Of a stretch of DNA of 64,000 bases, positions 1,006 to 48,267 are shown piece after piece. The number at the start of each line of letters is the position of its first letter. Positions within the stretch are counted from its first letter, which is position 1. The stretch lies in the NCBI GenBank assembly GCA_965113315.1, contig OZ220369.1. The stretch is one strand, 5' to 3'. The notes below the pieces were generated by a model. That model was not told where the DNA came from, searched no databases, and saw nothing but the letters and a program-made list of their open reading frames with translations. This DNA is from Podarcis vaucheri. Lineage: Eukaryota. A program made the translations under genes and the position numbers.

Positions 1006-2157
1006 GGTTAAAGGGTTGGACTAGAATCTGGGCTGAAATCTCCACTACAACCATGACTTAACTTTGGACAGTCACTCCAAAGTCTTATCCTTTCCTTCAG
1101 AGTTGCTCTGAGGACATTGGGGGGGGGGGGGAATGACACCCTTCAGTACTACTTTGAGCTCCTTGCAAGAAAGGTGACCTTACTTCAACTCTGTGTCCCC
1201 TGAAGGGATACTTGTTTGTGCAAGGCGAAAGGACTTGCCAACCCCCAACTCCCAGCCATCATTAGTTGCGGGGGGTGGGGGTGGGTAAGGGAGGGGACAG
1301 AAGCCATCATCTTACAGGTTCAGATTGCAACAGGAAAAGAGTCCTCGGTGCTGCCCTCTGCGTCTTGCCATACTCCCAACTCTGCTCATCCTATGAGGAA
1401 GAGGACGCTCAAACCAAATACATTTCTTAGTCTTTAGGGATCCCCAAGGCTCTTTTTGCTGTGGTGGTGAAGAGCAGACTTCTTCTGAATCTTGTTTGGA
1501 CTCCACAAGCTCCATCTCCAGCAATCCAGCTGGTGAAGTTTGCATAATAATTGTTGGCTGGAGAATCACAATAATCCCATTCCCCACTGCCCTGATTTCA
1601 TCCTGTCCTCTGTGAGAGCGTAAACACCCCATTCCCCACTGCCTCAATTTCATCCTGTCCTTCATGAAAGCAGCATTGCCAGCTGGATGCACATCAAGTC
1701 TCACTGGGGGGTAGATGAGAGAGGCAGCTGACCACAGCTCCAGTCAACAGGACCTCAGCAGCGAATCATTTGCTAGGATAGTATATGTCTAGAGAACTTC
1801 TTGTGGCTCTCGAAAGTGCTTCTGCCTGGCTCCCCCTCTCCTGTCACGCAACCCAACAGCGGGTGCAGACACAGCTTCTGTTTCTGTAAGGCAAACAGGC
1901 TGGCAATGAGCTTCAGGAACTTTAGCCAATCATAGATGGGAACTCTAAAGTGTTTCCCCCCTTCTTTGCTGCTCCTGGAATCCTACACATGCCCCCCTAA
2001 CCCACTGACCTCTGCCCTAAAAACTTCTCTCTTAGGGACTTGTCATACTTTGGAATCTTGGCCTTCAAAAACAGGAATGTCCTCTGCTCAACGTCTATGC
2101 AAGGAGCTGCAAAACCAGCTACTAAAAGCAGGAAAGGTCTCATTAAACCGCATGGTC

Positions 2158-2163
2158 TTTATT
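2158..2163 (-). terminator. Probable AP1G1 polyadenylation signal AATAAA
   Basis: tttatt on + strand, ~970 nt past the stop, preceded in the transcript by TGTA elements. Confidence 0.55.
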
Positions 2164-3128
2164 TTCAGTGCCAATATTACAGATACAACACAAACGTCCC
2201 AGGAGGAGAACGAATTCAAATGGAATCCAGGACTCTGACAGACTCAGGAAATGAAAAGGGCTGAGGGGGGAAAGCAGCTTTGCAGTGGAGTCTTGAGATG
2301 AGTCTTTCTGCAGGCAAATGGTGCCCCCCCTTTCCATCTTTAAGCAACACACATTTCCTTTCTACCCACCTACCACAGCTGACAGCCAAGGATCAGACAA
2401 GAGGAGTTCCAAGATTTGGGGTGGGGGCACACTGAAGAGCGACTTGCTGGAGGGAGCAGCCAGTCTCGTCCATCATGATGCTTTCTGAGAGGGAGGCACT
2501 GGCCAAAGAGGGCTTGACGTTGCTGCCTCCACCACTGAATCCTCCAAAGCAGAGCTTCTGTCCAGAACAGCAGGTCCACCTATCCATCCCCTTCTCAGAC
2601 TCAAGCCACTGCCCTCGGGGTGTGCAGTCAAGCGTAGAAAAGGCCCCCCACGTCAGGGAACTCCAAGGAGAAAGGGTCACCAGCATCCTTGGAATACATT
2701 TCCAACATGAACTCTGGATGAAAAGTGCCTGAAGGTGGTAACCCGGCTAGCAAGGAGCCGAAACAAAACTCGCTTCACTCACTCACTCGCCCACGCCCAC
2801 CGGAGGAGAGAAGATGGCAGGCGGGGAGAAACAGTCGCACATGCCACAGTGCACCTCCCCTCCCCCCCTTCCAAAACAAGGGGAATGTGGCTTCTGTGGC
2901 AAGTGTGGCTCAGCAGCCAGGAGAGGAGAGAAGAGAGAGCGAGCCAGCAAGTGTCTTAAGAGATATGCTTCATCAAGGTGAGCAAGGCCAGTCCTCCTGC
3001 TCTGCAGCAGCCGCTGCTCTCGTCAGCTCCCCTGGCCATGGTGCAAGTGGGGGGATTTCTGGAGTCACAGCGCTCTGCCCAGCGTTCCTTCGGCCAACCA
3101 GGTGGGGTGAGGAGGGTGGGGCCAGAGC

Positions 3129-20887
<17,759 letters not shown>

Positions 20888-45800: not shown

Positions 45801-48267
45801 GTGGTGAGTTAGCATCTTAGCACACCTCACTACCTGCTGTGTGAACAAGGTTTTCCAGCTGTTCTGGCAGGTATTGCCTATCTGATTCTGCCATTAGGAA
45901 GGGGCGCTGGTCTGACTTAACAATTTCTCCCTTTAGGAGCACTTCAACGGGCTACCGGTGGGCACCTACCAGCCTTTCACCAGCCTTCACCCACCTCAGA
46001 TTCCAGCAACACCTCCAACATACGAGTCTGTAAGTACTGCTGATGAAAAACAAAAGCTGAATTGCTGGGAGGGCAAGTCCTCTCTGCTGGGACTGTTGCT
46101 GTCCCTAGTCTAGTGCTGGGTATTGGCAGGCCTTCCCACTTGGACTGACTGAGGAGTTGCCATCCACTGGATTTGGGCTTGCAGCAAACTTCATGCACTT
46201 TTGATATGATTTTGATTTATTGCATTTCTATGTTGCTTTTCATTCATTCATTCTATGTTGCTTTTCATCTCAAAGCAGCTTACAAACAATAAATAGCCAT
46301 AACATAATAAAACATACTAGCATGTCGCAAATACAGCATACATCATATAAAATAATCAACAAATTATCAATAAAACATCAGTAAAACAGTGGCAACAAAA
46401 CAGCAACTAAAAAATAAGCTAAACCTCACAATTACAGCAAGTCATGTGATTAACAAATCAATTCGGCATTTAGAATCTATAAAACAATATTAAAAACATT
46501 AACAAAATAGCAATTAAAAATATAAGCTAAGCACTAAGTTCATTCACACAGTCTCTGTACCCCCATGACTCATAATCTTTCACTCTGTTCAGTTCATTAT
46601 AATACACATAAATGCACATAATGCCAGATGTTGCCCTGGCTGGGGTCCTCGAGTCGTGGGCCATGGTGGAGATGATGGGGCTCTTAGGCCTACCGCCAGT
46701 GGTAAGGTGGATGTTGACTGCCTAGGCATTGTTGAGGAGAAACTTGCCCAGGTCACTTTCAATAATCAGGAGTCCCATTCCCACTTGAGGAAGTCCAAGA
46801 CAAGCCTGTCCCTCTGGAGCAGCGAGTGGCAACTGCACTTGGTTTAGAGGACGACCAGGAGGTCCAGCAGTGGCCCTGTAGCCTGTCCACCAGGAGCTGC
46901 TCCAGCTTCTTCAGCCGCACCTTGGTTGACATTGTGGTGGTAGAGGAGGCAGCCGCTGAGGGAATCGAGCAGGGCAGCTACTTGAGTCTACCAGGCAGGA
47001 GGGAGGGGCTGTGATAAAGATACCAAGGGAGCTTAGCATGATCTCAGCAGCCTGGATGAGCTTGCAGGCAGTGACTCAGAGGTCACCTTGGTCTCAGAGA
47101 CCAGGCTGCTGCCCATGGAAAGCATGAGCGGAGGACATTGACCAGCAGGGGTAGAGGATGAGATGTGGGGGTGGGCTGAGCAGCTAGAGAGTGTGGAAAT
47201 GGGGATGTGTCCACCTTCATGCCCTTTTGCTTGTTCAGCTACTGCTCTCCAGACTTCTGTGGTTGCTGGTGGTGGTGCTTCATGTCAGGTTGAAGGTGAG
47301 ACCGCCAGCGATGGTGAAGAGCTACTGCACCGTCAGGCCATCCTTGGGGGACATAGCCAGGGCCGCTTGCTAGTCAGGTAGTCAGCCATGCTGAGCAGCT
47401 CTCCCTCACCTATGGCACCACCAGGCCAGGCTCACCACCACTGCTTCCTCCTCCAGATCCCTCATTTCCTTCTTCCTTCTGCTGTCTGGTCAGGCTGCAT
47501 GAAGAAGATGGAAGCACCAGATATGGTGCTTCGTCTGTGCATGTAGGCCTCTAGGGAGTTGTCAGGTGGTGGTTCTGTGTGGGGTGCTCCATGCAAAGCC
47601 AGCTTTTTTCTGTTTCAGATTGATGACATGGGTGCTGACAAGGAATTGCCATCCCCACAAATGACCGGTGAGTGAAGGGCCGGAGAGGGAGGCTGTGGAG
47701 CTGGCAAGGCAGTGAGGAGGGAGGGAGGTGGTGATGTCAGGGGAAAGCTGGTGTTTATTGTTGGTCCCCTTCACTCTTGTGTTCGCTCTTGAGTTGCTGA
47801 GGTAAGCATGTGCCCATGTGTGTCTGTGTTGGGGCAGAGACTGGGACTCTTCATGGCAGAGAGCTTGGGCCCCTTTAACAACTGGTAGGAGCTGCAAGGC
47901 TCAACTGAAGTGCAGCAAGTGCTCACTTCTGCAGGACATATACTAACTGTAGTACAGCAAAAAGAAGAATGGTCCTACCCCTGCCCCTACTACTGTTAGG
48001 TAGACTACTGTTTTCGCTGCCTTGAGCCTGCCCACTGCTTGTAACCAGTCACTCTTGTCTGCTGCAGGACCAGCCCCAAAGCCACAGCCGAGGGGGAGGC
48101 CACCAGCTGCAGTTCCTAGTTCGGGCGATAATTTTGTGCTGCCAGAGTTGCCATCTGTGCCAGACACGCTGCCTGCCGCTTCTGCTGGTGCCAACACTTC
48201 CGCCTCAGAAGACATTGACTTCGATGACCTCTCTCGAAGGTTTGAGGAACTGAAGAAGAAAACTTAA
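42883..48267 (+). CDS. IST1: IST1 factor associated with ESCRT-III, 9 coding exons, 366 aa
   Basis: Exons 42883-42970, 44104-44284, 44426-44513, 44783-44866, 45299-45409, 45498-45704, 45937-46029, 47619-47667, 48068-48267. Sum 1101 nt. MLGSGFKAERLRVNLRLVINRLKLL...EDIDFDDLSRRFEELKKKT* (C-terminal MIM). Probable non-coding exon 1 donor at 41188; AATAAA at 49119-49124. Confidence 0.97.
43555..43971. mobile_element. Tc1/mariner (Tc2-like) MITE
   Basis: 27-bp TIRs ccgtatttttcgccctataggacgcac / gtgcgtcctatagggcgaaagatatgg, with TA on both sides. Confidence 0.88.
44930..45115 (+). mobile_element. CR1-like 3' tail fragment (related pieces at about 11540-11710, 14470-14605 and 62085-62190)
   Basis: Shared ggccact..gag.a.aggatgctgg.ctaga...gatccagcaggctgttcttatg motif. 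Confidence 0.55.
46780..46932 (-). pseudogene. CDC42BPB (MRCK-beta)-like exon 1 fragment
   Basis: MSTKVRLKKLEQLLVDR[deletion]LLDLLVVL*TKCSCHSLLQRDRLVLDFLKW+G vs MSAKVRLKKLEQLLLDG...[30 protein letters not shown]. Confidence 0.88.
47023..47150 (-). pseudogene. Cyclin L (CCNL2-like) exon 1 fragment
   Basis: LR[-1]MLSMGSSLVSETK[-1]DL*VTACKLIQAAEIML[-1]LPW vs CCNL2 [38 protein letters not shown]. Confidence 0.78.
47208..47283 (-). pseudogene. USP7-like exon 1 fragment
   Basis: MKHHHQQPQKSGEQ*LNKQKGMKVD vs USP7 [26 protein letters not shown]. Partly low complexity. Confidence 0.65.
47290..47389 (-). pseudogene. IMPDH1-like first coding exon fragment
   Basis: MADYLTS[+1]SGPGYVP[+1]KDGLTVQ*LFTIAGGLTFN vs IMPDH1 [33 protein letters not shown]. 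Confidence 0.88.

Follow-up and report, generated by a model that had tools for sequence, protein, structure and literature searches.

A chain of gene-start pieces lying antisense in an IST1 intron of the lizard Podarcis vaucheri, possibly grown stepwise by exon capture

An insert lying antisense in an intron of the gene IST1 was analysed in a window of 64,000 nucleotides (nt) of Podarcis vaucheri (contig OZ220369.1 of assembly GCA_965113315.1; all coordinates are positions in this window). Read 5' to 3' on the minus strand, it is composed of a leader, an IMPDH-like, a USP7-like and a cyclin L-like piece, the start of CDC42BPB, a fifth gene-derived piece, a T-rich body and a tail, with all five gene pieces and the tail sharing one direction. 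As a whole, the observation is real: two of the five gene modules have been confirmed by tools, and the reading of the chain as the product of serial growth is supported in outline by a gradient of copies that falls from the tail towards the 5' end. We give an even chance to the view that the insert is old, fixed and dead and belongs to a non-autonomous family of retroposons, dependent on a long interspersed nuclear element (LINE), which grew stepwise at its 5' end by exon capture.

Results

Depth gradient along the insert

The summed depth of the Logan contigs of the source species (X1), for which the single-copy level is about 25, was used along the insert as a rough proxy, and as nothing more, for copy number (Table 1). 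Depth falls in a step-like manner, at or near the borders of the modules and with no smooth decay: from ~3449 to 437 at about 46625, from 240-610 to 92 at about 46945, and from 54-120 to 25.8 at about 47205. The numbers of other contigs agree with these steps, with up to 70 in the tail, 9-13 in the fifth piece, 9 in CDC42BPB, 1-4 in the region of cyclin L and 0 beyond. In the source species, the USP7 and IMPDH modules are single copy and are found only at this locus, where the IMPDH piece is also held by the sister species (organism E) and by another species (organism G), whose reads and Logan contigs were mapped to the locus. Both modules may be private to this copy. An earlier note on this DNA had placed CDC42BPB early and IMPDH last in the growth of the chain, an order that the stepwise 5' drop in depth and the uniqueness of USP7 and IMPDH to the locus support; its claim that the insert belongs to a family is likewise supported, as the CDC42BPB and fifth pieces recur in 9-13 other contigs.

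The other contigs also bear on the state of this copy. At 46844, nine of them have G in place of T, which turns the TAA stop found here into TAC (Tyr), as in the LYTECS motif of MRCK beta, the product of CDC42BPB, and parent-like letters are present both at this position and at 46851. Because the contigs carry such letters, the copy in the window is a decayed member, and the majority of the family stands nearer to the parental genes.

Gene-start pieces on the minus strand

The pieces were read by translating the minus strand in three frames. The insert is without any long open reading frame (ORF). The coding part of the IMPDH-like piece has two frame shifts and one stop, while the CDC42BPB piece, which reads STKVRLKKLEQLLVD and then, after a shift, ..LLDLLVVL*TKCSCHSLLQRDRLVLDFLKW (asterisks denote stops), has a frame shift, a deletion of roughly 25 nt and a stop. 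Five letters lie between the end of the IMPDH piece and the ATG of USP7, and 1-28 nt between the end of CDC42BPB and the next start. With gaps of 5 nt and at most 28 nt, three junctions therefore have no room for a promoter flank or an intron.

In the earlier note, four named gene starts (those of IMPDH1, USP7, cyclin L and CDC42BPB) had been described, all in one orientation. The sequence is indeed as described, and minus-strand translation bears out the common orientation; as for the names, that of CDC42BPB could be confirmed and the three others stay likely. Two stop-free pieces of CDC42BPB, searched separately among 177,635 PDB sequences, match residues 1-16 and 39-59 of human MRCK beta and are colinear. 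The piece covering residues 39-59 returned MRCK beta chains only, and the one covering residues 1-16 returned MRCK beta in second place. Two colinear matches on one protein of 177,635 are far beyond chance. The similarity stops directly after Trp58, which was presumed in the earlier note to be the end of exon 1.

Concerning the IMPDH1, USP7 and cyclin L (CCNL1/2) pieces, the names are assumptions of ours, drawn from likeness to the N-terminal sequences of these proteins. Against IMPDH, about 22/33 residues would be identical, including MADYL, GYVP, DGLT and GLT.N, in order and starting from an ATG, and the match that we assume with cyclin L includes C.LIQAA.I.L. All three names are likely, the strongest being IMPDH and the weakest USP7. 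Neither the USP7/IMPDH piece nor the two cyclin L pieces gave a PDB match, their stop-free pieces being shorter than 20 amino acids or of low complexity. A Pfam scan of seven pieces yielded nothing above threshold (one sub-threshold DUF match only), and the 57-amino-acid CDC42BPB ORF had no homologue candidate within the length range searched, longer relatives lying outside that scope. A literature search for the N-terminal peptides of the three proteins found none, and Rfam and tRNA scans of the insert gave nothing.

The fifth piece

The segment between CDC42BPB and the T-rich body, to which the earlier note had assigned no source, turned out to be gene-derived. In organism E, 22 stranded RNA reads match 46652-46718 (about 84%), with the minus strand as sense and all with the same 11 differences. 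On both sides they continue into CpG-rich letters, including GCCATGG, a start-codon context, and they read MGQMLN.VNIHLTTGGRP..; the direction of the library was fixed by IST1 exon reads, which lie the opposite way in the same run. At 46655, 46675, 46686 and 46695, the letter of this mRNA is carried by 9-13 contigs of the source species. Because a stranded mRNA of organism E matches it, the segment descends from an expressed gene, and it probably stems from the start of that gene. When the fifth piece was searched against protein representatives, the two matches obtained were both to repeat proteins, scored over several stretches, and were judged spurious; Pfam gave nothing useful for this piece.

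The T-rich body and the tail

The T-rich body contains two tandem units of ~100 nt (46530-46430 and 46422-46329); their alignment score is 78, vs. 44 +/- 5.7 for shuffles. The number of units varies among copies, since contig joints skip or add 78-140 nt. In this variability the body resembles the tandem-repeat body, with a variable number of tandem repeats (VNTR), of the SVA elements. [quoted passage not shown]

The tail has a consensus shared among copies: 22 and 18 other contigs enter it at 46267 and 46271, respectively. It appears to be of LINE type, with a tandem terminal unit like those of stringent LINE/SINE tails. In the 64-kb window, no further copies of the insert or of the tail motif were found.

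Stranded RNA reads of organism E also match 35 nt of the body (46562-46596 only), with unrelated letters on both sides. They probably stem from a further copy of this repeat that lies within an expressed transcript.

The host locus and the age of the insert

IST1 lies on the plus strand: a stop-free stretch of 90 amino acids at 45474-45743 matches residues 183-252 of human IST1 (E 1e-23). The exon ending at 46037 (the ..PPTYESV exon, ..CAACATATGAGTCT) is spliced to 47619 in 53 RNA reads from run X24 of organism E, and contigs of organisms E and G show the same join. The match and these spliced reads bear out the antisense position in IST1 that had been proposed for the insert. The intron so defined (46038-47618) measures 1581 nt, of which 1384 nt are taken up by the insert (~46197-47580), so the original intron had only ~200 nt. 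The insert ends ~30 nt from the pyrimidine run of the acceptor of the intron, and the RNA reads still show normal splicing.

Contigs of the two other species cross the module junctions at this same locus. Those of organism E (46484-46924 and 46896-47325) are about 98% alike, and those of organism G (46270-46843 and 47039-47273) about 94-95%. Together they bridge the tail/fifth/CDC42BPB and the CDC42BPB/cyclin L/USP7/IMPDH junctions. An assembly chimera, which the earlier note had considered, is rejected, the junctions being bridged by contigs of two other species. Because the same insert sits at the same locus in all of them, the chain is older than the split of the source species and organisms E and G.

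RNA depth is 0 across 46946-47585 in run X24 of organism E, and there is thus no sign of present activity of the insert. In the small runs X15-X18 of the same organism (guessed to be RNA), viewed over 46050-47950, nearly the whole intron is covered at a depth of 9-14, vs. ~169 for the IST1 exon. This agrees with pre-mRNA or carried-over DNA, and not with a transcript of the insert as such. As for the limits of the insert, an exact 9-mer duplication candidate at 46157/47646 was rejected, as position 47646 falls within the IST1 exon at 47619-47668; the candidate retained is included in Table 1.

Table 1. Modules of the insert, bordering features and depth zones in window coordinates (depth, summed Logan contig depth in the source species; multiples of the single-copy level are a rough proxy for copy number only)
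Feature	Position	Strand	Description
IMPDH1-like start (likely)	47289-47580	-	leader of ~190 nt; coding MADYL.. ..GYVP.. ..DGLTVQ*LF.. ..GLTFN at 47389-47289
USP7-like start (likely)	47208-47288	-	five leader letters, ATG at 47283, His/Gln run, ..GEQ*L.., ..MKVD to 47208
Cyclin L-like piece (likely)	47023-47207	-	47150-47023 (..SMGSSL.., one frame over ..CKLIQAAEIML..) plus 57 nt upstream that may belong
CDC42BPB (MRCK beta) start	46780-47022	-	leader of ~90 nt (47022-46933); coding residues 1 to 58 at 46932-46780
Fifth gene-derived piece	46626-46779	-	MG..VNIHLTTGGRP.. frame
T-rich body	46269-46625	-	most repeated module; GC 0.27-0.30; depth 2000-6000 vs. baseline 25; up to 70 contigs
3' tail	46197-46268	-	GCTGCTTTGAG.. 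box; 25-27-nt unit x2.3 (Tandem Repeats Finder period 25); (AATG)n; A-rich end with AATAAA
Possible target-site duplication	47581-47589 and 46188-46196	.	CTCCATGCA and CTTCATGCA; 8/9 letters equal; read from sequence
IST1 exon of 50 nt bounding the intron	47619-47668	+	seen in RNA reads and in contigs (organisms E and G); opposite mate strand, depth 28
Depth 2000-6000	46242-46625		body and tail; ~80-240x single-copy
Depth 240-610	46626-46945		fifth piece (437-449) and CDC42BPB coding part; ~10-24x
Depth 54-120	46946-47201		CDC42BPB leader and cyclin L; ~2-5x
Depth 25.8	47266 onward		USP7, IMPDH and flank; 1x; preceding bin (47202-47265) at 30.4

Discussion

Proposed stepwise growth by exon capture

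In the origin that we prefer, the basic unit of the family would be a module of ~400 nt, made of the T-rich body with its variable tandem units and of the LINE-type tail. At each round, a copy placed in sense behind an expressed gene's first exon would be transcribed from the promoter of that gene, and the element would be joined to the first exon at the RNA level, most likely through a splice between the exon-1 donor and a cryptic acceptor close to the 5' end of the element. The transcript would end at the tail, and the partner LINE would copy the RNA back into the genome. The fifth, unnamed gene would have been captured first, followed by CDC42BPB, cyclin L, USP7 and finally IMPDH1. The modules, their common direction, the family, the stepwise gradient of copies and the occurrence of the insert in sister species are observed. 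What we infer in this scheme is that the pieces were joined by splicing, the most economical reading, that the element landed in intron 1 and that the captured exons had any promoter role.

An RNA route is favoured because the pieces have one direction, copies fall from 3' to 5', the tail is of LINE/SINE type, the junctions are tight, and inverted or Helitron ends are absent. The earlier note had already proposed that the insert was RNA-mediated, which the LINE-type tail with its 25-nt unit, the shared direction and the lack of inverted ends support. Stepwise growth is in turn favoured over a single event with several jumps, as versions lacking some of the 5' layers are present in many copies. 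Taken further, the data would suggest that squamates possess an SVA-like composite retroposon family, evolving by the repeated capture of CpG-island first exons, each of them a new portable promoter, into chains of at least five; we hold this broader claim tentatively, at somewhat below even chances.

Several points weigh against growth by exon capture as just outlined. Summed contig depth, from which the gradient is drawn, stands for copy number only roughly. Contig joints from 47144/47145 to 46925/46872, and from 46775 to 46520, are not predicted by a simple nested series, and deletions or sister subfamilies must be invoked to account for them. The ends of the insert depend on the possible target-site duplication, which is weak evidence, as 8 of 9 equal letters have a chance of ~0.1 in zones of this size. 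The cyclin L piece is without a start codon, and the letters 3' of it begin with GTATCT and end with CACAG, resembling the ends of an intron, so that they could be a retained intron. Three of the names, as said above, are assumed. In addition, the parental USP7 and IMPDH exons did not appear at 80% likeness among the mapped contigs: either filtering removed them or the pieces have diverged strongly.

Alternative origins

The chain may also have grown stepwise and through RNA, but with an abundant mRNA's 5' part joined to the element by template switching of the LINE reverse transcriptase or by an RNA ligase. Chimeras of two or three RNAs produced by template jumping are documented (PMC2104539; bioRxiv 10.1101/2025.02.02.635956), and the single direction and the absence of introns fit such joining as well as they fit splicing. 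However, random landing would be unlikely to fall within the first 100-250 nt of long mRNAs five times, and at two junctions the downstream partner would not begin at a plausible cap site, the USP7 leader being 5 nt long and cyclin L probably starting in its coding part. The similarity to CDC42BPB moreover stops after Trp58, the exon end presumed in the earlier note. A single jumping event would leave no intermediates, whereas multi-copy forms with fewer 5' modules exist. On this balance, we regard joining by template switching or ligation as rather unlikely, if still the most serious of the alternatives.

We may, on the other hand, have read too much into the 5' half, if only CDC42BPB and the fifth piece were gene-derived and the likeness to IMPDH, USP7 and cyclin L had arisen by chance in a GC-rich leader or in transduced flank. 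None of these three names was confirmed by the PDB, Pfam and literature searches, and the USP7 match consists in part of a low-complexity His/Gln run. The assumed matches with IMPDH (about 22/33) and cyclin L nevertheless speak against chance, as does the fact that each begins at or near the start of its protein, and such a coincidence seems improbable to us.

Lower still do we place the possibility that one or more of the layers are unspliced 5' transductions, in which the element inserted a few bases past a first exon, and read-through from the promoter of the gene took along the exon and a stub of the intron. The GTATCT..CACAG letters that follow the presumed end of the cyclin L exon would agree with this, as would the ~90 nt of leader retained by the CDC42BPB piece, but landings within about 15 nt of the donor would be required, and the other three junctions have no GT where the coding similarity ends.

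The least probable origin, to which we give very little credence, is capture at the DNA level by a transposon of the cut-and-paste or rolling-circle kind (Pack-hAT or Helitron) that piled up the 5' ends of genes in the manner of Pack-MULEs. Terminal inverted repeats are absent from all plausible ends, and beside the candidate duplication the inner ends lack complementarity. Helitron ends (5'-TC/CTRR-3') are missing in either orientation, the pieces are co-directional, and three junctions are too tight for promoter flank or intron. The copy gradient from 3' to 5' and the LINE-type tail are what reverse transcription starting at the 3' end typically leaves.

Significance and comparison with known systems

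If growth by serial exon capture is true, a chain of five layers with surviving intermediates would constitute a natural time series of exon trapping in a distant lineage. It would mean that exon trapping can go through repeated rounds, with a preference for first exons, perhaps for their promoter activity, and that composite retroposons built on a tandem-repeat body had an independent origin outside hominoids. The chain also offers a way of dating promoter turnover in a retroposon lineage, and it carries a warning for annotation, since such chains imitate gene starts.

Among known systems, the Pack-MULEs of plants are like the lizard insert in favouring the 5' ends and first exons of genes, in having several gene fragments per element and in forming multi-copy families. 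Pack-type DNA transposons differ from it by their inverted ends, 8-bp duplications, promoter flank and intron start, none of which is seen here. The chimeric retrogenes formed by template jumps (U6/L1; the tripartite ones of Magnaporthe) are similar in that RNAs are fused head to tail with a LINE-related 3' part (PMC2104539), but they derive from a single event and their 5' parts are usually full-length small RNAs, whereas the lizard element has multi-copy intermediates and only the starts of mRNAs. L1 chimeras with first exons, as well as spliced integrated retrotransposed elements, carry one or more sense first exons at the 5' end of a retroelement. In the case of L1, the carrier is autonomous, and single captures, not a chain, are reported.

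For the SVA_F1 and pt_SVA_D6 subfamilies, the accepted origin is the capture of a single first exon by splicing, and such capture is thought to be one of the ways in which L1 renews its promoter. For L1 chimeras with first exons, such as RAP1GDS1/L1PA2, splicing has been proposed, and the co-opted promoter allows further copies (bioRxiv 10.1101/2025.02.02.635956). In SVA, first exons were spliced onto the element (exon 1 of MAST2 in SVA_F1) and then amplified, and in chimpanzee pt_SVA_D6 some members carry, further 5' of exon 1 of STK40, exons of 8 other genes (PMC6139936). The statement of the earlier note that no chain of this type had been described was therefore too strong, as stacking of captured exons is on record in pt_SVA_D6; what stands of it is that in open-access text we found no chain of five first exons, nor any such family in a reptile.

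It is with SVA_F1 and pt_SVA_D6 that the lizard element has most in common: all are non-autonomous composites in which the tandem-repeat body is variable and the 3' end LINE-dependent, have a GC-rich host first exon in sense at the 5' end, and form subfamilies of tens of copies sharing a captured exon. The lizard element differs by its unrelated body and tail, by a tail of tandem units rather than poly(A), and by its squamate host; the use of donor and acceptor, too, is in its case what we infer. It differs above all in its number of layers, at least five from five genes vs. one or two, so that the chain goes beyond what was found described, a case of two layers being already known from the chimpanzee.

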